A stretch of 64,000 bases of DNA, from positions 1,054,001-1,118,000 of the forward strand of contig JALMLS010000322.1 in the NCBI GenBank assembly GCA_038496445.1, in the 5' to 3' direction. How positions within the stretch are numbered: the first letter of the stretch is position 1; the number at the start of each line of letters is the position of its first letter. Position numbers and translations under genes: made by a program. Source of the stretch: Trichosphaerium sp. ATCC 40318. Taxonomy: Eukaryota > Protista > Tubulinea. Shown in pieces: positions 2,768 through 32,300 of this stretch. The notes beneath the pieces were generated by a model, which ran no database searches, was not told the DNA's origin, and saw only the letters and a program-made list of their open reading frames with translations.

Positions 2768-3520
2768 AAGAAAAGAATGGAAAGTGCTGTAGTTGTATCA
2801 CGAGGGTGCCCGCGGTTTAAAAGAGAGTACTATGATTAGTTTTTAGTCCAATTTTAACTCACAAAAATAAAAAAAAATCAAAGCGCCAGCTTGCTTAATA
2901 CGAGTATTGTATAGATACATACAACGGTTTTTGGCCATTTAAAGCAAGTCTGAAAACTGACAAGATAAAAAAACGAAACACAAAAGTACACTTTTTGAGA
3001 CCTTAAAGGACTGTGCTTTCGAGCTACTAAACTTGTAGAGGTTTGCTTTTGGAAGTCCAGAAAATTGTGTACGGAAAAAGACGTAGCAGACGGTAACAAC
3101 TACGTTACGATCAATCATTATAGCCAACTACTGTGGCTTTATCAGCCAAATCAGTGTATTTACAGAATTCACAAAAAGAAATTTCAAACCTCATCTCTTA
3201 GTTTTTGAAACTGCAACTTGCCATCGTAATCAGGGACCTTTTGACTCTTGTGTATGTATCGTGTATCTTTGCATTGTTTAACGGCAACAGTTTGGGAGAT
3301 TAACAGAAGCAGGGAGTGGACTAGCGAGGCAAACAAAGAGATTTTTTTTTAACATATTAACAATATTTATTAACCCGAAGAAAAATTGTACAAGAGTACT
3401 TCGATTACATGCTCTCTGTCTCTTATTTGAAATCAAACAAAGCTTGAGAATGCTAGCAATGGTGGTGGGGGGAAGAATTTGGTAAAATTAACCGTTTGTG
3501 GTGGTTGGCAATTTTGGTTT

Positions 3521-6056
3521 TTATACAGCAGGAACTGCTTGAAATTGTACTATAACTTCATTCCAAAATCTGTCCTTGCTGTAAGTCAAAAGACTACTCT
3601 TCATAGCCTTGACTATCAATGATCTTGCCATACTTTGATTAATATAAGTAGCAATAGCACCGCCTATAAAGAGAGAAAGTAAGCACTTGAGGAAGCCAAG
3701 AAAGTGAAGAAAATCGAAGAAAGAGAAAAAAAAAAGTGCGTACCTAGGATAACTAAATCGCAAAGCATTGCTGTAGCAAACTGTTGTAGGGTCTTTTGGT
3801 CATTATGAACATCCATAGCCTTTAGTAGAACGTCTACAAGGACTTGTTTTTCTGTATCAGTATCTAAAAGCAGAGTTAGAAATCGAAGAAAGACAAAGTT
3901 AAAGAAAAAAAAAACTTACTTGGTCTTCTGAAATACATAAAGAAAAGGAGCAAAGTGCCTTCAACTTGAACTGAAGCGTCTCCCTTGTATCTTTTCAAAA
4001 ATCGTAGAATCTTTGATTTATATTTCAATAGAGATGCAGAGAACTGTTGGTTAACATCATCTAAAAATAAAACAGTAAGTAAGAGAACCAAGAATCGAAA
4101 TTTCAAAAAAAAAAAAAAAAAAGGAAGGTAAGCACTTACCATCAAGTTGTGCAACGTTTCTTAGGCATCTAAAGAGACTAGATGCTACTTCTGGTTTCTG
4201 TCTGTGACGTTTCAATATTGTGCTTGTCTTTGAAATAAGGAATGTGTTAATTGATCTGAATCTTTTACGTTCTAAAGAAAGAAAGTAAGTCGTAAGAACA
4301 AGGAGGAATTACAAAAAAACAAAATTCCAAAAACAAAAAAAAACTCCATCAAAAAAAACTCCACACATTCCTCACATTTCCAATAAAGATACGTTACAAT
4401 AGAATAACGGTTCAAAAGTGTGTTTTAAAAAGGTATTCAAAAAAAAAGGAGTGAAAAGAAAGAAAATACGAAGCGACACAAAACTGGAAAACCGAAAAAA
4501 CTGTTTGTCTATTTTCTGGTGTATTTAGGGAAGGTGTGAAGTAAAAGAGTTTTCATGGTTTCTTTTTCCAGAAACTAAAGCCTGAGGCCCTTTTTTGATA
4601 AAAAAAGATGCATACCTCTATAGAAAACTCCGCGTGTAAGAACAGCGATAAGGTCTAAGCACCAAGTGATTACATTAGCGTTTTCTAGGTTTTTTCCAAG
4701 GACTTCTTGTAAAGCAGCAAGAGCACCCTTTTCAGCGATAATACGCTTGTTTTCTGGATCTAAAAAAAGAGGTTTTAGTCACACTTTCCTTTTTCAAGAA
4801 AATAGAAGCCAACACCGGCACAAAAAGAAATTTCTGATTAAAGGCGCGAAAAAAGGGACAAACGAAGGTGTAAGAAACAACTACGTACTGACTAGAGCCA
4901 AGTTCTTCATTAGGAAGCAGCCATAGTCTACTACTTCGTTACAGTCGTGATGAACTCTGAGCGCTTTAAGAACACGCTCAATACCGCCTTTATGGAGTAC
5001 AATAAGGCTGTTTTGGTTTTCTTCTAAACAAGGAAAATAAGATAAACGTAAAAGAAAAAGAAGAAGAAAAATTTCTTTTTCGAAATCTTACCACTACACA
5101 AGTTACCAAGGGCACAAAAGGCACCTGCTAGGAAGTCTTGGTCTTTAATAAAGTATTTAAGGCCATTTAGGATGAGCTAAATCAATCAGTAAGACAGAAA
5201 AATCAAGATTGAAAAAAAAAAACCGTTTCGCACCTTTACAATTTTGCATTCGCCGAAAGTTTGAACGTTGGCTTCAACGTTTTTAACGATAGCTGGTGTA
5301 GCATCTAAAGCGATTTTTAATTAGTTTTCTGGTATTCGAAACACAAAAAAAAAAAAACGAAATACTTACCAGCAGGATAATAACATAGCCTACGAATAGC
5401 ATAACAAGCTGCTTTTTGGAACAACAAGCTTTTTGAGTGTGTTTTCATTTTTTGGACGATAACATCGATTTCGGTGTTTTCTTCGGGATCTTCGTTACGA
5501 GAAGCGCCAATACCAAGCAGTGGTTGCACAAGTATACGAAGGCTTGACTTTTGTCGTCTCTTCTCGTGTGATAATAAAAAGGCAAATGCTCTGCTCTCAG
5601 CTGATAGAAAGTTCCATTTAACTGGTGGTATGAGAAGTGCCTAAAGAGAGGGTTCGTTTTAGCTTCTTGTAGAGTGATTTTATTTTTTAGTTTTTATTCA
5701 AAAACGCCTTTACAATAAAGTAATAGACGATAAAAGTTGTCGTATTGTATACGTATATACGTACCTTATGGATAGCTGGCCATTCGTGTTTGAATGATGC
5801 GCTCCAAAGTTTATGGTCGTTTACAACAGGTGCTCTTAGTTGCGTACATGCAAGACATAAGTTGTGTAGGTCCTTTGGGCTAAGGGTGGCGCAGATTTCG
5901 TATACTAACTACACAAAAATCGCGTTAAAATTACCAATATTAGTCTAGTACGGTTCGTACGTTACGAAAAACGAAGGCCATGGTGTTTCCGTCGTTAGTT
6001 GGTCTAACATTAATAGGTGTGCCAATACGTGGTGTAATAGGTACTGTAGGTGGCAT
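3521..6056 (-). CDS. F-box + armadillo-repeat protein (Aardvark/Arabidillo-like architecture)
   Basis: Exon near 5765-5908 gives LVYEICATLSPKDLHNLCLACTQLR...DHKLW (F-box-like). ARM-like repeats follow: FQKAACYAIRRLC, AGAFCALGNLC, GGIERVLKALRVH...YGCFLMKNLA, NKRIIAEKGALAAL. Confidence 0.75.
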
Positions 6057-15205: not shown

Positions 15206-16642
15206 TTATTGAAATGGAACATCATTACAAGCCTTAAACATAATCGCTCCAATCTCTTTGACAAACTTAGCTGCAACCTTAGCATAAATTAGCAACCTTT
15301 TCAGGAAATTGTCAAGCGAAAGAAAAAAAGCATTACCATTGCAGTGACTGCATTAGTGTCCCTATTTGGATTGTATTCAACAACATCACCACCAATTAAT
15401 CTCTTATGTACTAACTTATGAATACAATTCATAACTTCACGTGTCCTAAAGAGCACATTAAACGACTCTGATAAAAAAAAGTAAGAATTTCAGTTAACAC
15501 TCACGTCATGCCACCTGGCTCATAGTGGCTCACACCTATGTGTTGTCAAATACAGATACTTTATTGTGTTTTGTGCCTGGAGCAAAGGCGGGATCAAGTA
15601 CGTCAAGATCAATAGAGATGTAAACTTTATCGTTTTTTCCATTTGCAAGTCCTTTCAAATGCTGGTAAAGATCTGATTTATCTTCAAGGTCTTTCATCTC
15701 AAAACCTTTTACATTGTGTTTCCTATCATTAAATGACTTAGTAAATCATATTGTTAAGTATTGTGTACGCTATCTGATCACGTTGGTGGTCAGTGAGTGT
15801 TCGAAGTCCAATCTGAGTCAAAGACTTTGCTAACTTTCCTTCCATTATTCTTGCAAAAGGTGACGCATGTGAGAATCTAAAAATAAATCATTACAAGCAC
15901 CACCTCATGGTTGTATTGAAAAAAGGCTCTGTACGGATTGCCATCAAAAAGAGCATAGAGATCACTGTGAGCATCGAAATGTACAATATGAATATCATCA
16001 TTTGGATGTTTATGTTTTAACGCCTCAAAAACAGGATACGTAATATAATGATCTCCACCAAGTGTACATAAAGGTCCACGTGTCTTTTCAATATTCTCAA
16101 CAGTCTGTTTAACTATACTCTCGTGAATAGCCTTCCGTGAGGAATTAAGACATCCACTTTCATCTGTCCAACAAATAAGTTAAAAAAAACTCCCTCAACA
16201 CTGATCACGTGATTTATTTCTTCTTCACCTGGAGTTGGATCTTTGATGACTAAGTCTTTACAGTCGATGAATATACTATCGTCCTTATCTGTGACATGTC
16301 CAACATCTAAATCAACTACTTCTACGCCGGTATCTAAATGGGTACTTTTTTAGGAAATGTGTTGAAGATATTTCCACAAAAATCACGTGATGTCACTTAC
16401 TTGCTGAAGGAGACATCATTGCATTTCGTATTATAGAAGGTGCCATTGATGGTCCGCGCATAAACGACGAGTTAAAGTCACATGGGACACCTTGAAGCGT
16501 AACACGTTGTTTCGAAGCTACGCTATACTTCCTACTGCCACGTTGAAGCGTAAACGATCTCGCTAGCGGTTTGTAAGGGCAATAGAATAGCCTTGTTACA
16601 ATTCAGCGTACCTGAGTGCTTTCCTACAGATAACAACATCAT
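15206..16642 (-). CDS. Ureohydrolase (arginase/agmatinase family, plant-arginase-like)
   Basis: NSSFMRGP, GGDH, HFDAHSD, SHASPFARIME, SIDLDVLDPAFAPGVSHYEPGG, DVVEYNP. Confidence 0.92.
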
Positions 16643-17266: not shown

Positions 17267-18161
17267 CTAAATGTGCTTGAGTGTGATTTCTTGGCCTTTC
17301 CAATTGAACACAAAAGTATCATCAACAAACTCAATATCTTTTGATAACTCAAGAGCAAAATTTGAACCTATTAAGCCATATCCTCCAAGCTACAAGGAGT
17401 GTCAAAACAAGATAATAAAATATCATTTAGTAAGCTCAAAGAGTAACCTTTGCAGGGTGGTAAATACGAGATTCTTCTGACACACATAATTCTACACGAA
17501 AAAAGGTTAGTACAAGTTGTGAAAATAAAATGTCAAAACCTGTTGGTTGAAACTGTTCCTCAAGGTCTCCTCCATAGACTAGAACATCATCACTACCTGT
17601 AGCACACAATTAGTACTAACTCATATTTAACTCATTTGAAGAACCTTTCGTTTTCATGTCGTGAAAAACTATGGGCTTGTCATCTACCTTCAAAAAGTTG
17701 GATTCTCTGTAAACAAATATTTTTAAATAACATCCTAATTTATATCACGTGCAACACGTGATATGTACCTTCCACAAAGAGAAAGAAATGGGAAATCTTC
17801 GGTGTAATGCTCAGACTTATTATCTCGCTACAAATCATGGAAGCGTCAGTTCACCAATAGACAATCGAGAAGTGAATCGTACCAAATTTCTGAAAAAGAA
17901 ATTTAGAAAACGTTTTTCCTTCAAGTGTACAGGCCCAAAAGGCATTTTCTCAGTGTCTTCGTCAATACAATAGAGTTGCCCTTTATGTATATTATTAGCA
18001 CGCATAGTTTGAGGCTAGGAGCGAGGAGTACCGTGGTGGTTAAGCCAATAAAAGTAATGTCGGTTATCTGGTTGTTTAGCTGATACAAACGATCTAGAAT
18101 GCGTTTTTTTGTATGCACGTATTGAGTTGGAACGCTTTGAATACGTTTTGATCAGCAACAT
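17267..18161 (-). CDS. UPF0598 / C8orf82-like (DUF4505) protein
   Basis: RHYFYWLNHHGQLY...KEKRFLNFFFRNL...ESNFLKVDDKPIVFH...SRIYHPA...GYGLIGS; basic N-terminus. Confidence 0.8.
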
Positions 18162-18326
18162 TAGTTTTATTACTATTTTAACGTAAAAATAGCTATAAGA
18201 CTGCGCCGCTGGCTTAGTTATTGTACTTGTACACCTAACAATCAATACATAACGAATTGTAAGTCTAATTCAGTCAATAAGTACAATCGCGTTAAACAGC
18301 GAAATAAGTCTCCAGGCGTTAACCAC

Positions 18327-21300
18327 ATGCCTCCAAAGAAGCACGCAGGGGCGTCTTTGAGTGACAGTTCTAAGAACAAAAATGACAGCGCTTTTGGTAC
18401 GTTTAGTGACAGTAATACCATCTAACGTATCAAGGTGCGTTTATGGGCGCTCTATTAGGTGATGCTGTTGGTGCTTATCTCGAATTTAAAAGTGCGAATG
18501 CTCTACAAGCGCTACTGTACCATTGGTAAACTAATTAACATGTTTGCGTAAAGAAAAACAACCAACAAAGGCCGAAGTTAAAAAAGCGTTTGAAATGCCA
18601 GGTGGAGGTTACTGGAAAGGTAATAGAATGTTAAACAAGCGCTTTAGCCATATTTTATCGTTTTGAAACGTTTTTCAATCGGTTGACTAAAATCCGCTTG
18701 CACTCAGTGCCGGAAATCGCCTTCCTACGCGTAGGAGATCACTGCTACAGCTTTTAACATTTTTTTGTACAAAACAGCTAACTTCCTTTTATAGTTGCTC
18801 CAGGACAAATAACAGGTACGTACCATTATTCATATTGATGTGGAGAACTTTTACAGCGTTGTAGTTGCTTTTAAAGCATACAGCTCCAATTTTTTGTCAT
18901 TTTTTATTTATCGTTTTTATGTTAATTGTTTTTCTTTCGTTAGATGATGGAGAGCTTACTCTGGTACGTTTTGTCATTTTTAGTGTTTTTGATTGTATGT
19001 TAACATGTATTTAAAGTCTCTCGCATATGCACTTGGTGATAATCAATCATGGAATCTCGGTAAACAAAATTCTTTTTTTGTATTTCGTACATTTTTTTTA
19101 TGTTGTTTTTTTTTCGTCCGTGTCAGCGTTTTCATTTTACTTCGGGTTTAGGCGAAAGTAATTAATATTGATTTATTTATCGTAGAGTCTATAGCTAAAA
19201 AATATCATGCATGGATTAAGAGTGAACCTTTTGATTGTGGTGAAACAACACAAATGGTATTGTCTTCACAACCTCCTGTTACTCTTAGTTTACACATATT
19301 GACTAGAGTATCGGTTGCTATGATCTTGGAGAGCCGTATCAGAGCATGTGTGCTAAAGAAGGGTACGTATTTCAATCATCATTTTGAGCACTTTAATTTC
19401 AAAAAAAAAATAAAAGATTCTAAACAAGTCGCCTAGGTACGCAGCTGCCATGACCGCCTCTGCGAAGACAAACACTCAAAAATCTCAGTCAAATGGTAAC
19501 TTAATGCGTGTTGTTCCATTAGCAATATGGGCACACAAAGTACGCCAAACAGTGCTGTTAAATCGTCTTAACAGTATCAAAAAAAGTTGACAGATGAAGA
19601 AATTGAAGAGATTTGTCGTGAAGAATGTAACTTGACTCATCCTAATGTTATATGCCGTAACGCATCGACTTGCTACTGTTTAGCTATATCTCACCTCATG
19701 AATAACTTTGGTGATCGTATGGGTGCCTTTAAAAGAGCAAAATCTTGGGCTGATGAAAACGCTTCAACAATCGTCCAGGGTATGCGTTAAGATACATTAT
19801 TAACCTTCAAATGTATTAAATTCATTATAGGGTGGTTAGAAGAAGCAGAAGCTGGCGTGTACGTAGTAGAATTAGCGAGTTTTGTCATTAGAAGTAATCC
19901 GGTTTTTTTCTTAAAATAGTGATGTTGATTATCGAATGAAAAAGTGTCACGGATGGGTGAGAATCGCTTTTACTCATGCCTTCAGGCATTTATACCATGG
20001 TACCAAGTTCATGAAAGCTCTCGAAGAGACACTAGCTGGTGGTGGTGATACAGGCACGTGCCATTGTATTTGTTGCTTTTTTTTATTATTACCACGTGAA
20101 GAGCACGTGACTTTTTAATGATTTCTGTGTACTGATACATAGATTTTTTAGATACAAATAGTTGTATAATATGTGGTCTCCTTGGAGCTGCAGTTGGATA
20201 TAAGGGATTGTACGTACTTGAGATTCTTTTTATTTTAAATACTCTTTTGCTTTTGTTTTGATTCTTACTTTTCTTTTCTTTAGACCTCAGGAAATGGTTG
20301 CTAAAGTACTCAGTTGCGATACTAATATGGGTATGCTTATTAATTATATAGCCATGATTTGTTGATTGATTGATGTGTAGGAAAACGCAAAAGGCCACAT
20401 TTCCTTCACCCAATGAATATACTTGAGCTCAAAGATAAAATTCTTAAAAATGCTCCTTCCTCTCTCACGTAAGATATAAAACACTTGGGTTTTTTTTACT
20501 CATTTACATTTATAAGCCGTGACGATATGCAAATTGATGATGATAAGACGTTGTCTCCAGTTAAGAAGAAGAAGATTACAAAAATGAAAAAAAAGACACC
20601 GAAAAAAAAGTCTTCGCCTCCAAAACCAAAATTCTTTGTTTTAATGCCAACAACTGAAGGAAACCCTGTTCAAGTCACTGACTCTGAGATGATACTTGGT
20701 AGAGGAAAGGCTCTTGGTATCTCAGATAAGCGTATAAGCAGAAAACAACTGAGACTTACCAAGCTTCCAAACGACAAACTGAAAGTGACAGTGGTTAGTG
20801 TTTTGTTCACTCTCTTCATGCTTGTTTGCTAATTCGCTAAGATTGGCACCAACCCTTCTTTCATTAAGAAATCCGACGGATCTGAGGAAGAGCTTGAAAA
20901 GAACTGCTCAGCTGAACTCGTGGATGGAGACACAATCGTATTTTTGAGAGATCCTGAGCATGAACGAGGTATAATCATACTTGAGTGGTACTGTCACTCA
21001 TTGTGGTTTTAGACTTGTATATATTCACAGTTATGCTCACAACTGGGCATGGTAAGGATGAATCTTCAGATGAAGATGATGATAGCGAAGAAGAGGTTGT
21101 ATTAACACGAAGAAAAAGAAGAGCTGACAAAACAGAAGATGAACCAGAAGCGAAAAAAAGAAAAATTGAGCCTGACATGGACCTGGTTAGAAAACTTCTA
21201 TTAGTAGTCCATTCATCACTCTAACGCTGTATTGTTTAATAGTACAAACAAATGAAGGATATAATACCACATCTAGATAGAGAACGAGCAAGAGGAGCTT

Positions 21301-23099
21301 TAATTAAAGCTGAAAACAAACTTGACAGAGCGATTGATATTTTGTTGTCTGAGGTACACTCATCGATTGCTTTGCTTTCTTTCTTTGCTTCTTTTTCTAA
21401 TCAAGCATATTTAATAGGGTTTGAGTCAACCAAGTGAAGACGAACCACCTGTTACAAAGCCAAAAAAGAAAACACCAAAAAAGAAACCTCCATTAAAACG
21501 AACTGACAGCGAGTTTGCCAGGCAGTTGGCCAGTACTTATCAGCTTGAAGAGAAGACTAAACGGTATGTACTTTTGGGTTATTCTAGTGAATTGTGCTCA
21601 TATTAAATTAAATAGGGTTGAAGCAGAGAGTAAAAGTAAGGATGCAATCATTGAGATGCTAATGAAAGAGAAGACTGAGTTGGAGAAAAAGAGTAAAAGC
21701 ACAAATATTGACCAAGAAAACCTTCAAAAATTATACTTACCTGGTACGTATTTCCACTTTGCTGTAGTTAGTACTCGTGTCACCCACTATGGTGTGAGCC
21801 CTAGTCTTTGAGATATTAAGTGGGTTGTTTTTTTAAAGGTGAGTTGGATGCTCTTAAGGGTGATGAGCTCAAGGTTTTTACTCTTTATCCACAAAGAGAG
21901 TTTGAAAATGATGCTGCTTCGTTTCATTTCAGGACAGCTGAAAGTCAGTTTTATAGGTTGATGGAAGGTACGGTTTATTGTCGTTGTTGTAATGAGTACC
22001 ACTAATGTATTTGTAAATTTGTTTAGCTGGAAATCTTGGACAAGGCATAAAAGTAACAAAAGTCGAGTATTTAGTAAACCCAAAACTTGTTAAGCAGTTC
22101 AAAAAAAAGAGACTTAAACTTGCTGAAACAATGCCTTGGTCTGGTAAGTATATTATTAACCATTCGCATCATCATAGTGTTAAACTAATGTTATATGAAT
22201 AGACACTAAACCTATCCTTTGCTTTCACGGTAAGCACGCACTTACGTCAAGGCGAAAAAAACTTAAAATGCTAAAACATAAAACTAGGAACTGGAGAGGA
22301 CAACCTGGATAATATATCAAAAAACAACTTCAGCTGCGATTTTGTTGGTTCTACAACTGATAGGTACATTACCACTTATTCTATAGTAATCCTAATATTC
22401 TATATAGCGGATATTATGGCGCAGGCATATGTACATGTTTATACTACTTGACCACTTGGCTTTGTTTTGACTCGTTTTTTGTTTAGATTTCTCAGAATAT
22501 CCTTCTTTAAGTCTTGGTTATGTTAAGGGTTGTAGTAAGTTCATGCTTTGTCAAATATTGTTGGGTACTCCTAGAACTTAAGGGTTATTGTGTTGTTTAC
22601 ATGATATAATAGGTAAGGTATATAAATGCCCTGGTTTGATGATGGGTGCTAAAAAGGTAGCTGGGTTTGATTCACATACTTCACCGGATGGTTCTGAGAT
22701 TGTGATATTTGACATGGACCAGATACTACCGTATTATATTGGTACACACCATATTAGTTTTTACCTATCTAACAGTGTATGTAGTACACTACACAGCAGC
22801 TGGAGTAGCTGTAAAGGATTACTATAATAGTATGTCAAAAAAATCATTTTTGTCTAAATTCGTTCCAACTGACGTTCGTTTTAGCTGCTATGACAGAAGG
22901 TATGGGGATTGGAAGAGGTAGAGGAAGGGGAAGAGGTAGAGGTTATGGCCGCGGTAGGGGGTAAGTCCAATCATTTTTTGCGGATAGATAATTATATCCT
23001 TACAGCTGTGAAGCCAACACTTTTTTTTGAGTATTTTTTATGATATTTCTTGTGTTTACTTTTATTGCTAGGATGTTTATGGGTGGATTCCATTTCTAA
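18327..23099 (+). CDS. ADP-ribosylglycohydrolase - FHA - UBA/CUE-like - PARP catalytic - RG-tail fusion protein
   Basis: ARH: GALLGDAVG, GQITDDGELTL, SNGNLMRVVPL, THP, GGDTDTNS. FHA: LGRGKALGISDKRISRKQ...IGTNPS. UBA/CUE-like: IIPHLDRERARGALIKAENKLDRAIDILL. PARP: CFHGT, YGAGIYFSEYPSLSLGY, GFDSH...SEIVIFDMDQILPYYIV. Tail GRGRGRGRGRG. Junctions checked join in frame; the stop is at 22964 or 23099. Confidence 0.85.
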
Positions 23100-23529
23100 T
23101 ATACCAATATAAGCACATTGCTGTAATCTAACAAGAATTGTATTTAAACAAAAAAACAAGAGTACTTCAATACCTGAAAAAACAGAGAAAAACAGAGAGC
23201 TACTAGTTCAGAAATTACTTTGAAGCTACATTGGTTGTCAATAGTTTTTGGAAAGCCTCAAATACGTACTGGTCAGTACAAGCATACTTTCACCTTTGTT
23301 ATTAGTAAATGTTTGTTCTCAATTAAAATTAAGTTTACCACATGGCTTTAAGCCATGTTCCTCCTTTGCTATACGCTTGTGTAGAATGTAGCACAAAAAA
23401 GGGAGGGGCCACCGAAATAGAGTGTGTTCCAGGCTAGCTCACTAATAGAGTGCACAACAATGGAACTTAGTGAAACTGTTAAAGAGTTTAGTGCGTTTTT
23501 AGTTTTGTTTAAGAAGATGCTACTGATGT

Positions 23530-26038: not shown

Positions 26039-26131
26039 ATTTGGGATGATACAGCGGTTTTTGGTCACTTAAGTCCAGGTCAGTGAACTAACTACCAATA
26101 TTGACTGCCGACCACACGTGTTCAGGTTAAA

Positions 26132-26896
26132 ATGGTCAACAATGGTAGTTTTATAACGACAGGCACTTCTTGTTTACATCACTTTATGGAAGATAATAAC
26201 ACATTGGACCTTATTTACCTGCCTGTGGAGATAATCGTCCATATCCTGAAACAAGGCTATTTTACGCTCCGTTCAGCACAAACATGCCGTTTATTGCGAG
26301 ATATCGTTCACAACCATGTTGGATACGGAGTAATAAACGTTAAAAGCGATAGGGAAATATCTCTTCTTTCTGGCAGCCCTTTACTTCAAAATACCTATAT
26401 TTCAACTCGCTTGATTTCAAAAGATGTTGGTGATAAGCACTTGTACTTGTTGAAGGGCGTACATACTATTAACTTATCACGTTGCCGTGAAATAACAGAT
26501 GAGGGCATCGAGGCATTACATGGTGTTCATACCATTAATTTATCCAGTACAGGTGTTACAGATAAAAGTTTGAAGGCATTACATGGTGTTCATACCATTG
26601 ATTTATCCTTTACAGCTGTTACAGATGAAGGTTTGAAGGCGTTACGTGGTGTTCATACTATTACCTTAACATGTTGTTTCACCATAACAGATGAAGGTGT
26701 AAAGGCATTGGCTGGTGTTCATGAGATTGATTTAGAAAGTACTCCAATTACAAACGAATGTTTGAAGTGCTTAGTTGGTGTTCATACTATTACTTTAAAT
26801 GATACACAAGCAACTAAAGAGGGTGCCAAGGTATTGGTGGGTGTACATAAAGTCAAATGGGATAGTAATTATTGGAAAAGAACTCTTACACAATGA
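26132..26896 (+). CDS. Intronless F-box + leucine-rich repeat (GVHTIxL) protein
   Basis: LIYLPVEIIVHIL...AQTCRLLRDIV (F-box) followed by about 6-7 repeats of vTDEGlkALxGVHTIxL. The true start may be ATG 26186. Confidence 0.85.
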   Translation: MVNNGSFITTGTSCLHHFMEDNNTLDLIYLPVEIIVHILKQGYFTLRSAQTCRLLRDIVHNHVGYGVINVKSDREISLLSGSPLLQNTYISTRLISKDVGDKHLYLLKGVHTINLSRCREITDEGIEALHGVHTINLSSTGVTDKSLKALHGVHTIDLSFTAVTDEGLKALRGVHTITLTCCFTITDEGVKALAGVHEIDLESTPITNECLKCLVGVHTITLNDTQATKEGAKVLVGVHKVKWDSNYWKRTLTQ

Positions 26897-27345: not shown

Positions 27346-29061
27346 ATGACATCAAGACTAGAGGTACCTCTTTTTTATGAGTTCGCGTATTTTTTAATAA
27401 CAACTCCAGGTAAACACCTCTTACGGCCAATGTGACTCCCTTTTACATCTACCAGTTGAGATACATCTTTGTATTATTGATTTTGATAACACAGCTTATT
27501 GTAAATGGCCAATATTATCAAAATACGCAGCAATTAGCTCAAGGTATGATTCTAAACTGAGAAAACATGGAAAATGGAAAAAATACGTGTCACCAAAAAG
27601 AAATAGCAGCAAAGTCTGGTTACGAGGTAAGTCCTTTTACAAGTGAAATTATAAACCCACGTTTTTGTAGGAAATAGTTCTTGGAAGCGTGGTAGACGAC
27701 ACGGAGAGCAAACAACATTTTTCAAAGCAGGCCACGTGATGAAAAAGTGCTTTTATAACAATGGAAAGTTGAGAGGCGACTACAAAGAGTGGCATACCAA
27801 TGGAGTGCCTTTGAAGCATTGCTTGTATGCGAATAACGGTGAATTGGACGGTAAATATACAAAGTGGTACAGAAATGGTCACCTAAAAATACAAAGTGGT
27901 TATGTTGGTGGTAAATTACATGGAGAGCACCAACTGTTGGATGTCAGGGGTGACTTACTTTTGCAATGTATGTACGTTAACGGTCAGCTACACGGTGAAT
28001 ACAAGAAGTGGTATGATAAAAGTAGATTACTAATACATAGCTTCTATGAGAACAATAAGTTGAACGGGAGTTATCAAGATTTCCATAGAAATGGACGTTT
28101 AAAGACAAATTGTTTTTATGAAAAGGGAGTCTTGAATTATGAGTACAAGGAGTTTAATCAAGATGGGGAGTTGTGTAAAGATTGCTTTTATGTTAATGGC
28201 AAGTTAAATAACGAATATGAAGAGTGGTGGTACGGACGTTTATGTCTACATGCAATGTACTCAGATGGTAAAAAAAATGGAGAGTTTTTACAGTGGCATT
28301 CGAACGGACAGTTGAAGGTTAGCTGTTTTTATGATAAAGGTCTGGTGGAAGGAGTGTACAAGAAGTGGTTTAAAAATGGTAAATTGGAAGCACATTGTGT
28401 TTACGTCAAAGGTCAGTTGGAAGGAGAGTACAAGGAGTGGTATGTCAATGGTCAAATATACAAGCACTGTTTTTATGTTGATGGCAAGCTTGATGGAAAA
28501 TACAAGGAAGCAAATACCACAGGCCTATGTTGGACGGAATGTACTTACAGTAATGGCAAGCGCCAAGGACAGTATAAGGTGTGGATCAAAGATGGGAATA
28601 TATGTACTCTTTGCTTTTATGTCAATGATAAGTTACATGGAGATTACAATAAGTGGTATGTGGATGGTAAATTGATGATTCAATGTTCCTATGCTGATGG
28701 TAAGTTGGATAAAGAGTACAAAGAATGGAACTTGAGTGGGGACTTACTAAAACATTGCTTCTATGTCAAAGGCGAGTTGAATGGTGAGTGCAAAGAATGG
28801 TATCCGAAAGGCCAGAAATACAAACATTACTTTTGTAACATGGGTATTATTGATGGAGAGTACAAGGAATGGCATGTCAATGGTAAGATGAAGAAACATG
28901 GGTTCAGTTTAAACGGGAAGAAGCACAAGAAATACAAAGAATGGTATGATACAGGGCATATAAAGCTAAAATGCCATTTTGAAAATGGTGTTTTGAATAA
29001 AAAGTACAAGTCGTGGTACAAAAATGGAAAGGTAGAAGAACAATGGCGCTTTCAGCACTAA
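27346..29061 (+). CDS. F-box-like + MORN-variant (MORN_2) repeat protein
   Basis: Two 5' GT-AG introns extend ORF 27736-29061 in frame to MTSRLE-VNTSYGQCDSLLHLPVEIHLCII (F-box-like). About 18 24-aa repeats of hCfYvnGkl.GeYkeWy.nG. TATAAAA at 27322. Confidence 0.85.
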
Positions 29062-29391: not shown

Positions 29392-32300
29392 TCACCACCA
29401 CTTTGTTTGGCTTGAAGTGAAACGGGAATATCCGCGCTCTCATTTTGGGTTTACATAAATTAATTAATCATTGAGGTACATAAGCATTAGGTTGAACTTG
29501 ATAACTAGGAACTATAAAAGCAAGTCAATAATCAAAAAAATAAAACAAAGAAAAAAAAAAGTTAAACAAAAACTGGCCGACAGAGCATCACACAAAACTT
29601 TTTTGGTAAAATCACCGATGTGTAAACGTAGCTGTTGTATTGGCTTACACAAGAAAAATTGCAAAGTTCAAAAAAGAAGAAAAGAAAACGAGATAGGAAG
29701 AAGAAAAAAAAAAAAGCAAAATGTTGATTGTTAATCAGTTCAGTACCTTGATAATAAGGTGTTTGACCACCAAATACACTATTAGAAAAATTACCATGTC
29801 TTCCATATTGCTTTGAAGCAGATGATTGTAAAGAAGAAGAACCATGGTTATTACTTCCACCACCAAGTGACTGTGATGTAAAATAATTTTTTTGCGTTGA
29901 CGTCGCATTACCATTATTATTATGAGTCCTATTGCCCCATGTTCCGTAACCACCCTATCATTAATATTAACACGTGCTCTTAACAAACATCAACGTACCG
30001 ATCCCGAAGTACTATTATCACCCCAAGTGCCTTGTTGTTGTGTAGGAGGAGCCCAAATATCGTATATCCGACGTAAGTCACTCTCTTGAACATTCCCAAC
30101 AGCTCCGCTAAGCAACTTGTACTGACCAGTATTAGCGTGATCTGAATGTGTATATTGTTGTCCACCACCGTTATTAGAAGGAGGAGGAGGAGAAACCATA
30201 TTATAACGAGGTTGAGATGACGAAGAATTTGGGTGTTGAGGTTGAGGTTGAGGTGGTTGAACAGAAGCAGTTTGATTCCAAATCCCAAAATCAGTTGTGA
30301 ATCCGTTACTATAACTCTCAATGGACCCATCGTTTATAGATGGTGTTGATGATAAAGAGTTACTTAGTTTCTTAGGTGTTGCTGAAAAATGATTTCTAGC
30401 ACCTCTATTTAAGAGGTACCCTTGATTCGAATGTTCATTATAATTTGTTGGAGGTTTTTTGAAATTCGAAGAAATAGGATTTTCCATTTTTTTTGAATCC
30501 TTAGAAACAGGTCTTTGTGGCGCTCTTGATGAAGGTCCTGATTGTTTTTTTATACTTGAAGGAGCTTGTATGTGTCCATGAGAAGGTGCTATAGCACCTG
30601 GATGGTGTCTATCTGGACCACCAGGAGCCAATCTGTTAAGACCTGAAGAAGGAGAAATAATTGTATTGTTGTTTGTATCGTTGCCTGTCAGTGAAACTGA
30701 TCGTGGTAGGAGCTTCGATCTCTCTGGGATATTTTGTTGTGTGTGATTTTCAAATAATGCACCCATTTTTGAGTGCATAGCTGATGATTTAAATGAGAAC
30801 AAGAACAAAAAAAACAGAGGCGCACAAAAAGAAAAAACAAAAAAAACGTACGAAAAATTGATTCTTCAGTTGGTGAGTCTAGAGCTAGACGTGCTACTAG
30901 AGAATCAAGTGGATATGTACTACTAGATGAAGTAGGTTGTGTGTGTATTGATTTTGTGGGTTTTTGTTGCTGGTGTTTGTCATTGATAGACTGACGACCA
31001 ACTGGCATTTGTGATGACTGTGAAACTTTAGGTTTATACGTTCCAATTGTATTATGTGATTGTGTTACTCTCCTTGTAGCCTGCTTACTATGTATATGTG
31101 CGAAAGGATCATTTGTATGTATATTTCGAGATTTAGGTGCCATAGAAATCATCTCTGACGCCCTTTTCTCTTCCTACAAAAAAAAAGTTAGAACAGATCT
31201 TATTGGAGTTAACAATCATTAAGAAACTACCTGTAGGCGCTTTGCTGCCTCCTTTGATTCCCTAAGCTTACGATCCATCTCTTCTCGTCTTAATCGTTCT
31301 TGTTCAGCGGCTTGTTGACGCTACACAGAAAGTAAGTACAAAGGAGGAAAATAGTCTTTTGTCAAAGATAAAAAAAAATGCAAAAAAAATGGCACTCACT
31401 TGGCGTTGCTTCTTGCTCGCTTCACCGCCTCTTACAATTACATTCCACCCATCAGATTCAGGTATTTTTGTTTTACATACTGCACAAGTAGTAGATGAAG
31501 CTTCATTTACAAAAGTGCACTTGCGACAACTCCACTGACCTGGGAGTAAAACAACTTTTGCAGGATCTGTAATACCTTCATCAATTTTTTTTCTTTGTTG
31601 AAACTCTTCTAAATAAGCAACCCTACGAACACCATTAATTTATTATAATGATTGTCAAGTATGTGTACCAAAGAGGAGCTCTAATTGTTTTATTAAGCTG
31701 ATCACCAACTTGTTCTGTCCTGTTCAGTAACCGCCATGATTTTTTTGTTAAAATTTCCTTCAACTTTGAAGGAATGCCTTGTGGTAAGCTGCTCGGCCGA
31801 TAATCTTCTCCCTTTTTGAAAAATTAAATATACAACTATATATCTAATCAAACCATACCTTGTGCTCGCCTCTGACAAAAGTTTGTGTTGATCCAATTGC
31901 TGACAATTCTTTCAACATTAAAATTGCTTCATACACTTGTTGATGCAACCTTCGCACTCCCTTTTGACAGTTTGTGCTCTTTACAGCGCTTTTTAGTTGA
32001 CCAGCTTCTCTAGCTACTATATCAAAGGTGTTAGAAAGCAAGATAATAAAAGAAAACCGAAAGACAAGTGAAACGTACGTTGCCTTATATTCGCTAACCG
32101 TTGCATAAAATTTCTTAAATGTGTATACTTTTCTAAAATTTCGCACACTTGTGCGTCTGTAGCATCTTCATCAAGTTCTTTTATAGTTGCTATAGTCTTT
32201 GAACGTTGTGACCAATCATGCCATATATTTCGTAGCATTGATTCAACCTTTAAATGAAGACATAAGAAACCACAAAAAAAAAAAATTGTTTTTTATTCGT

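Follow-up and report, generated by a model that had tools for sequence, protein, structure and literature searches.

The locus described here raises the question whether one gene can encode both an enzyme that writes ADP-ribose marks and an enzyme that erases them. In animals these activities at DNA breaks are split among PARP1/2, HPF1, PARG and ARH3, and the setting of the balance between writer and eraser is of clinical interest through PARP-inhibitor trapping and the neurodegeneration of ARH3 deficiency. The window, i.e. the whole stretch of 64,000 nucleotides that was analysed, is from Trichosphaerium sp. ATCC 40318. On balance, and by no great measure, we consider it probable that this intron-dense amoeba carries a single gene for a protein with an ARH domain, a Lys-rich linker, an FHA domain, an NLS-like stretch, a CUE domain and a charged helical linker, followed by a PARP-like domain and an RG tail. 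The family assignments of the ARH, FHA and CUE domains are well founded on profile and motif comparison. The ARH and PARP-like parts appear to lie on one molecule, as follows from a gene model of which transcripts join only parts.

The exon and phase model of the gene comprises 30 exons on the forward strand (18327–22964), with a start ATG at 18327, splice phases that are consistent throughout and a product of about 906 residues. No ATG was found by direct reading between 18298 and 18327. Introns are 38–175 nt long and bounded by GT..AG, with one GC..AG exception. A spliced contig of 1382 nt from run X2 maps to 18298–20792 and covers exons 1–16 unbroken; introns 1–15 are absent from it, and its joints lie exactly where the model places them. 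Run X2 (21,965 records, 10.3 million letters) is probably a cDNA set, judging by its size, and the sequence CCCCGTACTCTGCGTTGATAC at the end of a neighbouring contig is presumably a match to a SMART cDNA-synthesis primer. The joint 18396/18435 is present in contigs from both runs, X1 and X2. Further downstream, exons 17 and 18 are joined in an X2 contig, and exons 21 and 22 in an X1 contig. Among the transcript contigs listed, none covers 21139–21684 or 21966–22900, which fall within exons 18–21 and 23–30; the introns without contig joints resemble the cDNA-confirmed introns in their donors, acceptors, lengths and low G+C content. An arginase-family gene, an F-box/LRR gene and a MORN gene are the neighbours of this gene.

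Features of the ARH-FHA-CUE-PARP-like gene, with positions counted from the first letter of the window
Feature	Position	Strand	Basis
5' untranslated leader (minimum extent)	18298–18326	+	start of X2 contig at 18298
Exon 1, start codon and 23-residue N-terminal tail MPPKKHAG...	18327–18396	+	gene model
ARH/DraG-type domain, exons 2–15, residues about 24–351	18435–20468	+	profile matches, motifs, Atlas, cDNA
Intron 12, GC-AG, donor GCACGT	20054–20151	+	joint 20051->20150 in X2 contig, with 2 ambiguous bases
Intron 15, ARH/FHA junction, 48 nt, GTAAGA..AG	20469–20516	+	joint 20468->20517 in 1382-nt X2 contig
Lys-rich linker KKKKITKMKKKTPKKKSSPPKPK, first part of exon 16	20517–20625	+	exon reading; covered by cDNA contig
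APLF/PNKP/aprataxin-type FHA domain, from within exon 16 through exon 17 into exon 18	20626–21040	+	PF17913, PDB
Acidic then basic stretch DESSDEDDDSEEE ... RRKRR ... KKRK	21041–21185	+	direct reading; cDNA up to 21138
CUE, predicted ubiquitin-binding three-helix domain, exon 19	21243–21353	+	PF02845
Exons 20–21: second Lys-rich stretch, DSEFARQLA, charged helical segment	21418–21743	+	reading; exon 21/22 joint in X1 contig
Putative PARP-like H-Y-E ADP-ribosyltransferase domain, exons 22–29, residues about 673–880	21839–22829	+	motifs read by eye
Exon 30 with the RG-repeat tail GIGRGRGRGRGRGYGRGRG; stop codon TAA at 22962–64	22885–22964	+	gene model
Optional exon 31, GMFMGGFHF, stop at 23097–99	23072–23099	+	if GTAAGT donor at 22961 is spliced

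All 14 introns within the ARH domain are removed in the X2 cDNA contig, and the motifs GALLGDAVGAYLEF, GQITDDG, NGNLMRVVP and GGGDTDTN can be read from the joined exons. A sequence-only reading of this DNA had described an ADP-ribosylglycohydrolase with intact metal-binding motifs, and all three of these are indeed present: GDAVG in exon 2, ITDD across exons 4/5 and GGDTDT across exons 12/13. The two split motifs are both backed by cDNA joints; the second D of ITDD comes from a split codon, as does a D of GGDTDT, a motif which is created by the removal of intron 12. In exon-level profile searches, exon 7 matched positions 78–98 of TIGR02662 (DraG; E 0.004), exon 9 positions 113–137 of PF03747 (E 0.011, 15.9 bits) and exon 10 positions 140–179 of the same profile (E 0.0012, 19.0 bits). 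These matches are collinear; taken exon by exon only, each stays under the gathering score of 26.2 bits, and their simple sum lies over it. In an Atlas feature search, 30 of the 30 matches were ARH clusters. The exons contain the residues of a binuclear metal site (the Asp pair in xTDD, GGD(T/A)D(T/S) and the Glu-flap glutamate), the roles of which have been described for ARH enzymes, and counterparts of hARH3 Glu41 and of the bridging Asp316 region were found on reading against the same work (PMC7050489). By these profile and motif comparisons the N-terminal domain belongs to the ARH/DraG family, and hydrolase activity is predicted for it.

The next domain is, from its profile match and alignments, clearly an FHA of the APLF/PNKP/aprataxin type, the subtype that had been suggested from the sequence. 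Exon 16 alone scores 28.8 bits with PF17913 (FHA_2; gathering score 23.1), and the eight PDB matches are all to APLF, PNKP or APTX, the best being APLF (E 8.6e-5, for the N-terminal half of the FHA). The LGRG and SDKRISR motifs align with GRG and SDKRVSR of APLF. A search of 1.84 billion representatives with the FHA piece matched one protein, the APLF-like P0001, to which the domain is 49–53 % identical, with LGRG and SDKRxSR kept. Exon 17, which would encode the C-terminal half of the beta-sandwich and has no Pfam match on its own, is collinear with residues 59–91 of P0001, albeit weakly (E 0.15 in a single comparison). Both phosphate-binding arginines (GR and SR) are kept in the alignment as counterparts of R29/R42 in APTX and R35/R48 in PNKP. 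These two arginines bind phosphopeptide as well as iso-ADP-ribose in PNKP and APTX, and FHA domains of this type also bind poly(ADP-ribose) through them (PMC3759693).

The acidic and then basic stretch that follows the FHA may be a bipartite nuclear localisation signal. Behind it, exon 19 matches the CUE profile PF02845 marginally (21.7 bits, the gathering score being 21.1; E 1.6e-4; positions 9–40 of the 42 in the profile), and no PDB match was found for this exon. The di-leucine of CUE domains is present, and the usual M-F-P motif reads I-I-P. Of the UBA/CUE-like bundle proposed earlier, the CUE alternative is thus retained, narrowly over the Pfam threshold, while UBA_4 matches exon 19 less well. 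The proposal of a UIM-like motif at DSEFARQLA found no support. At E<=10, exons 20 and 21 gave nothing but noise in Pfam, and UIM (PF02809) did not match exon 20; in our own reading, the Ala/Ser spacing of DSEFARQLAS departs from the UIM consensus.

In the C-terminal region, the H, Y and E motifs of a putative PARP domain occur in canonical order over about 120 residues, as read by eye rather than by a statistical profile. The H is found in LCFHGT (exons 24/25), the Y in GYYGAGIYFSE (exons 26/27) and the E in DGSEIVIFD (exon 28), where the split codons for the G following the H and for the Y itself complete two of the three motifs only after splicing. The pattern E[YFIV][IV][IV][FY][DNKRE] was found in the six frames of the window at this region only. 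Searched exon by exon, the single PARP exons (22–29, each encoding 7–43 residues) had no match in Pfam, including the PARP catalytic domain PF00644, or in NCBIfam, PDB, Atlas or the 5.8-billion protein index, and this counts against the PARP reading. Of the earlier assignment of a PARP domain with FHG, GIYF and SEIVIF, the motifs are present in the right order, and the domain itself is putative. No exon matched the WGR, helical regulatory (PARP_reg), zinc-finger, ankyrin or SAM families in Pfam. Judged by eye, the domain resembles the PARP10/14/15 type. The earlier assignment of the H-Y-E triad to polymerising PARPs is not diagnostic, since PARP3 and PARP4 carry H-Y-E yet only mono-ADP-ribosylate (PMC9189837). 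An RG repeat does follow the PARP motifs, in exon 30. X1 contigs at this exon were rejected as transcripts of the gene; they have mismatches and run on into unrelated sequence, and hence derive from other RG-repeat sequences. The donor GGTAAGTC overlaps the stop TAA, and the acceptor AG of an optional exon 31 lies at 23070–71.

As to function, we tentatively propose, as a possible though still rather doubtful reading, that recruitment by the FHA and CUE readers puts a PARP-type writer and an ARH-type eraser, both of them active, at the same site, and that the result is a self-resetting or linkage-editing pulse of ADP-ribose at DNA lesions. The protein may be recruited to DNA breaks. Through its FHA it would dock either on poly(ADP-ribose) or on a repair scaffold with acidic phosphothreonine motifs of the CK2 type; the CUE would add affinity for ubiquitylated chromatin or clients, and the Lys-rich and RG segments would contact PAR or nucleic acid. 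The transferase at the C-terminus would then modify itself and nearby targets, more likely with mono- or short oligo-ADP-ribose than with a long polymer. Removal of the mark by the tethered ARH, in cis or on neighbouring molecules, would keep the signal local and brief, or would clear one type of linkage as another is being added.

A different role, which we regard as unlikely, is that of a member of a lineage-specific expansion of PARP effectors of the conflict or immune type rather than of a DNA-repair factor. The FHA and CUE might then detect infection or stress through phospho- and ubiquitin-signals, with the ARH limiting the effector itself or protecting the cell, and this part of the reading is equally unlikely in our estimate. 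Very heavy giant-virus gene traffic is reported for the Trichosphaerium genome (PMC10521059), and an ortholog of the FHA piece was not detectable among the 1.84 billion representatives, both of which would suit such an origin. However, the only FHA matches in solved structures, i.e. APLF, PNKP and APTX, are DNA-break repair factors, the NLS-like and RG segments point to a protein of the nucleus that is associated with nucleic acid, and the neighbouring genes show no sign of a defence island. We prefer the tentative reading of a writer and an eraser that would act at DNA lesions, with a conflict or immune role as an alternative.

The fusion itself could be optional, if intron 15 were retained to give an ARH-only protein that ends at the TAA at 20470, possibly next to a separate FHA-CUE-PARP protein from the ATG at 20527, in which case the fusion would be just one isoform and perhaps a minor one. 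The layout of the junction makes this conceivable: the in-frame TAA at 20470–72 lies directly in the intron 15 donor, the ATG is 11 nt downstream of the acceptor, and the last intron has the same arrangement of a stop within the donor. The X2 contig, however, joins 20468 to 20517 at GT..AG borders, with 89 nt on the shorter side, and the codon ACC split across the intron gives a T. Because this contig lacks the 48-nt intron with its stop codon, ARH and FHA are joined in the mRNA. The exon structure and the in-frame ARH-FHA splice, which the earlier reading had described, are established. Two separate genes would give transcripts that end near 20472 and restart near 20527; the contig spliced across these positions argues against them. 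Among the contigs listed only the spliced form occurs and none is unspliced across 20469–20516, although assembled contigs drop rare variants, and the gap of 48 nt is too short for a separate promoter. We consider an optional fusion quite improbable and retain the fused protein.

Finally, that one enzymatic end is non-catalytic, the C-terminal region being degenerate or no PARP at all or the ARH a mere reader of ADP-ribose, so that there is no writer-eraser cycle, seems very improbable: PARP exons without a profile match and the existence of inactive ARH paralogues in animals (ARH2) would fit it, but exons of this size are expected to give no such matches, H, Y and E stand in the canonical contexts LCFHGT, GAGIYFS and SEIVIFD, and the ARH has kept every motif of its metal site, namely the D in GD.VG...E, TDD and GGDTDT.

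If the proposed pairing of writer and eraser is correct, this would be the first fusion of an ARH to a PARP, and it could serve as a minimal model of the way in which writing and erasing are balanced. The eraser joined to the PARP-type writer would then have the ARH fold in place of the macrodomain of PARP14, with an APLF-type FHA and a CUE for targeting, and the cis-regulation of ADP-ribosylation could be studied in a compact system. In addition, the protein could show whether PAR or phosphopeptides are the ligands of FHA_2 domains, and would provide an additional example of cross-talk between ubiquitin and ADP-ribose.

The literature searched yielded no description of an ARH-PARP or FHA-PARP protein, and sequence searches with exon-level pieces found no relative with the ARH-FHA-CUE-PARP architecture. 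As no such relative was found and the FHA piece matched only one APLF-like protein, conservation cannot be used as support. The earlier statement that the architecture is uncharacterised agrees with the literature searched, but the presence of a writer and an eraser in one chain is already known from PARP14, which both writes mono-ADP-ribosylation and, with a macrodomain, erases it (PMC10470015, PMC10499325).

PARP14 likewise combines a PARP-type transferase, an ADP-ribose-hydrolysing domain and reader modules in one polypeptide (PMC10470015, PMC10499325). We propose that the ARH tethered to the transferase may play a part analogous to that of PARP14 macrodomain 1. This likeness is one of design, the catalytic motifs having been compared by eye. 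The eraser here is a metalloenzyme of the ARH/DraG fold, whereas that of PARP14 is a macrodomain; the third residue of the triad is Glu here and Leu in PARP14; and the readers are an FHA and a CUE, compared to the macrodomains, WWE and KH domains of PARP14. PARP10, a ubiquitin-binding mono-ART, resembles the protein in that a PARP catalytic domain stands together with a ubiquitin-binding module and with segments of the glycine-rich or RNA-binding type (PMC2964712; PMC9189837). It has UIMs, RRMs and H-Y-I, in contrast to the CUE, RG tail and H-Y-E found here together with an ARH and an FHA. Enzymes of the ADP-ribose cycle also share one chain in the macrodomain-fused SirTM (Mfs1; PMC13720257), and the bacterial 'all in one' erasers that combine ARH3-like and MacroD domains follow the same logic (PMC4245714); neither pairs an ARH with a PARP nor carries an FHA.

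With APLF, and also PNKP and aprataxin, the protein shares an FHA that passes the FHA_2 threshold and keeps LGRG...SDKRxSR, APLF being the best match. Unlike in these proteins, no exon matched the PBZ finger, kinase/phosphatase or HIT families, and no Ku-binding motif was seen by eye; the enzymatic partners are the ARH and PARP-like domains, and ligand binding of the FHA is predicted. The ARH3/DraG family is represented by collinear profile matches on three exons, intact binuclear-metal motifs and the Glu-flap position. Most eukaryotic ARH proteins surveyed have no extra domains, the only additions being zf-RanBP, zf-UBP and WD40 (PMC4245714), whereas the ARH domain here forms the N-terminal third of a multidomain protein of 906 residues.

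The window has a G+C content of 33–41 % and is eukaryotic, with numerous short exons separated by introns of very small size; G+C and intron sizes are in agreement with the published Trichosphaerium genome (37.7 % G+C, mean intron length 75 nt; PMC10521059). A gene model built from translations in the three forward frames comprises 30 exons on the + strand, running from an ATG at 18327 to a TAA at 22962–22964 (2718 coding bases, 906 codons), and the phase is consistent at each exon-exon join. Introns measure 38–175 nt, have a G+C content of 0.31 compared to 0.40 for the exons, and follow the GT..AG rule throughout except for intron 12. Donors in this gene are mostly of the GTA type, often GTACGT and not GTAAGT. 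The stop codon is overlapped by a strong GTAAGT donor (22961); if this donor is used, an exon 31 adds nine residues and the gene ends at 23099, which is the end coordinate of the sequence-only reading.

Contigs of two sequencing runs, X1 and X2, were aligned to positions 17900–23400. X2 (21,965 records, 10.3 million letters) is read as a cDNA set, although its record carries no RNA label, because a neighbouring X2 contig terminates at 18253 in CCCCGTACTCTGCGTTGATAC, which presumably matches a SMART cDNA primer, and because its record count is close to that of the Trichosphaerium 454 transcriptome. This transcriptome is reported to consist of 22,137 contigs (PMC4359077). One X2 contig of 1382 nt spans 18298–20792, with introns 1–15 spliced out exactly as in the model. 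Among these is the GC-AG intron 12, whose removal gives rise to the GGDTDT sequence. Other joints are covered by a second X2 contig (exons 17/18) and by two different X1 contigs (exons 21/22 and exons 1/2). A processed DNA copy is an unlikely origin of the intron-less contig, given the 10-million-letter size of X2 and its cDNA-primer-like adaptor.

Intron 15 (20469–20516) has an in-frame TAA at bases 2–4, and an ATG (20527) lies 11 nt past its acceptor, so that the concern that the ARH and FHA parts belong to two genes was reasonable; yet the spliced in-frame form exists. The 1382-nt contig crosses the joint 20468->20517 (GT..AG, 48 nt skipped, shorter side 89 nt), which bears out the proposed single ARH-FHA reading. 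A rival explanation is an optional fusion that depends on whether intron 15 is retained. The spliced contig excludes, as the sole form, two separate genes as well as an operon restarting at ATG 20527.

Domain searches were performed one exon at a time. For the N-terminal part, exon 7 matches DraG (TIGR02662, positions 78–98, E 0.004), and exons 9 and 10 match PF03747 (positions 113–137, E 0.011, and positions 140–179, E 0.0012, respectively), i.e. three independent pieces in collinear order. A feature search of exon 10 in the Atlas, a library of protein clusters, returned exclusively ARH clusters (30/30 matches). Exons 9, 10 and 12 gave chance matches only in a phmmer search of the PDB. The metal-site motifs of the ARH family, whose roles have been described (PMC7050489), are intact (GALLGDAVGAYLEF, GQITDDG, NGNLMRVVP and GGGDTDTN). 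Together with the collinear matches, they support an N-terminal ADP-ribosylglycohydrolase.

Exon 16 matches FHA_2 with 28.8 bits (gathering score 23.1), and exon 17 extends the FHA alignment collinearly, albeit with a weak match. All eight PDB matches of a 56-residue FHA piece are to APLF (E 8.6e-5), PNKP or aprataxin, in accordance with the FHA subtype assigned in the sequence-only reading. Among 1.84 billion representatives, an exhaustive HMMER search with this piece found a single match, an APLF-like protein of 178 residues (53 % identity); in the alignment, LGRG and SDKRxSR show no variation. The window's own protein was absent from the matches in this library, which thus lacks both the proteins of this genome and close orthologues, and the architecture cannot be traced there in other species. 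Two metagenome scans, one with the FHA piece and the other using its alignment to the APLF-like protein P0001, gave no match. The predicted UBA/CUE-like bundle was recovered as a CUE domain in exon 19, which scores 21.7 bits (gathering score 21.1), while the exon-wise Pfam search lent no support to the proposed UIM-like stretch. By direct reading, the linkers and tail are lysine-rich, acidic/basic and RG-repeat segments.

For the C-terminal region, the H-Y-E motifs of the postulated PARP domain could be read directly and in order, but a profile match was found for none of its exons. LCFHGT, GYYGAGIYFSE and DGSEIVIFDMDQILPYYI follow one another as in PARP catalytic domains, with matching spacing. 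Split codons supply the G in HGT and the Y in GIYF, so both motifs are present only in the spliced reading, and the E-strand pattern is unique to this gene within the window (six frames). The flanks appear to us to fit the PARP10/14/15 type (strand, lysine-rich helix, FHGT, NF, YG.G.YF, S.S..Y, ...LG strand, FDS, E strand). Exon-wise searches of 21839–22829 gave no Pfam match at E<=10 and no NCBIfam match; neither did phmmer against the PDB with exons 22, 23, 27 and 28, or the Atlas feature search of the PARP region. The ORF surrounding exon 28 likewise found no match in an index of 5.8 billion proteins. These exons encode only 7–43 residues each, so missing exon-level matches are expected and do not count against a PARP fold. 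This region very probably adopts a PARP-type ART fold. No WGR, regulatory-domain or zinc-finger family was matched by any exon. The H-Y-E triad is not diagnostic of polymerising PARPs, since PARP3 and PARP4 carry it yet are mono-transferases (PMC9189837); polymerase activity is therefore not implied.

No X1 or X2 contig covers 21139–21684 or 21966–22900. We infer from sequence features that the ARH domain is continuous with the PARP-like region through this stretch, because the phases are consistent without an in-frame stop, the gaps of 43–64 nt are too short for a promoter, and the introns resemble the confirmed ones in donors, acceptors, lengths and low G+C content. At the RG repeat (22909–22943), mismatched X1 contigs of unrelated sequence overlap and continue into other sequence; similar RG stretches thus occur in other X1 transcripts, and depth at this position is no evidence of expression of this gene.

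Features in and around the ARH-FHA-CUE-PARP-like gene
Feature	Position	Strand	Characteristics
Armadillo/HEAT-like helical repeats (by-eye reading)	3500-5100	-	short exons
Arginase/agmatinase-family exon	15880-16179	-	PF00491, 52.5 bits, HFDAHSD
Intron 12	20054-20151	+	GC-AG, donor GCACGT, removal confirmed by cDNA-type contig
F-box/LRR gene	26105-26893	+	263-codon ORF, weak F-box-like start, LRR_6 repeats, unit GVHTI(N/D/T)L
MORN-repeat gene	27655-29058	+	468-codon intron-free ORF, nearly all MORN_2 repeats, 101.6 bits
Low-complexity candidate	29993-30865	-	291-codon ORF rich in S, N, P, Q, G

The arginase-family, F-box/LRR and MORN neighbours are uninformative on the role of the gene. An intron-free MORN ORF is unusual, as most exons of this genome are shorter than 200 nt. 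No Pfam family was found for the low-complexity ORF, nor a Pfam match for two pieces of the armadillo/HEAT-like stretch. Chance motif hits on the minus strand at 4.8–7.0 kb had suggested another ARH/PARP gene there, which was rejected, since this stretch reads as armadillo-like repeats; the chance motif GVGFYF at 4816 is not a PARP. The X2 contig ending in the cDNA-primer-like adaptor (786 nt, 18031–18253, minus strand) may mark a transcript start: if the adaptor is its 5' end, only some 45 nt would separate it from the ARH-PARP transcript, whose 5' end is at 18298, and both transcripts would have to share a bidirectional promoter of very small size.

We propose that the protein is most likely a targeted ADP-ribosyltransferase that carries its own eraser. 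Of this reading, only the presence of the domains and the joint between ARH and FHA are established. The FHA domain would dock onto CK2-type phospho-acidic motifs or, alternatively, onto poly(ADP-ribose), as the PNKP and APTX FHA domains bind this polymer via the same two arginines (PMC3759693). The CUE domain would bind ubiquitin; for the basic and RG segments, the ligand would be nucleic acid or PAR. The transferase domain at the C terminus could then ADP-ribosylate itself and its neighbours, and the ARH domain would remove the mark, leading to a short-lived or edited signal. Besides the optional fusion, rival explanations are that one of the two enzymatic ends is dead, or that the protein belongs to the PARP family as an effector in conflict or immunity.

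PARPs go unmentioned in the Trichosphaerium genome paper (PMC10521059). Neither the surveys of PARP and ARH architectures (Citarelli 2010, Perina 2014, Rack 2020 and two fungal surveys) nor a full-text search of the open literature yielded an ARH-PARP or FHA-PARP protein, so that the architecture is, as was suspected, without characterised precedent in the searchable open literature. That writing and erasing can reside in a single polypeptide is already established for PARP14, where the eraser is a macrodomain. The writer-plus-eraser principle is therefore known, whereas its realisation as an ARH-PARP/FHA-PARP combination has no match in the open literature searched.
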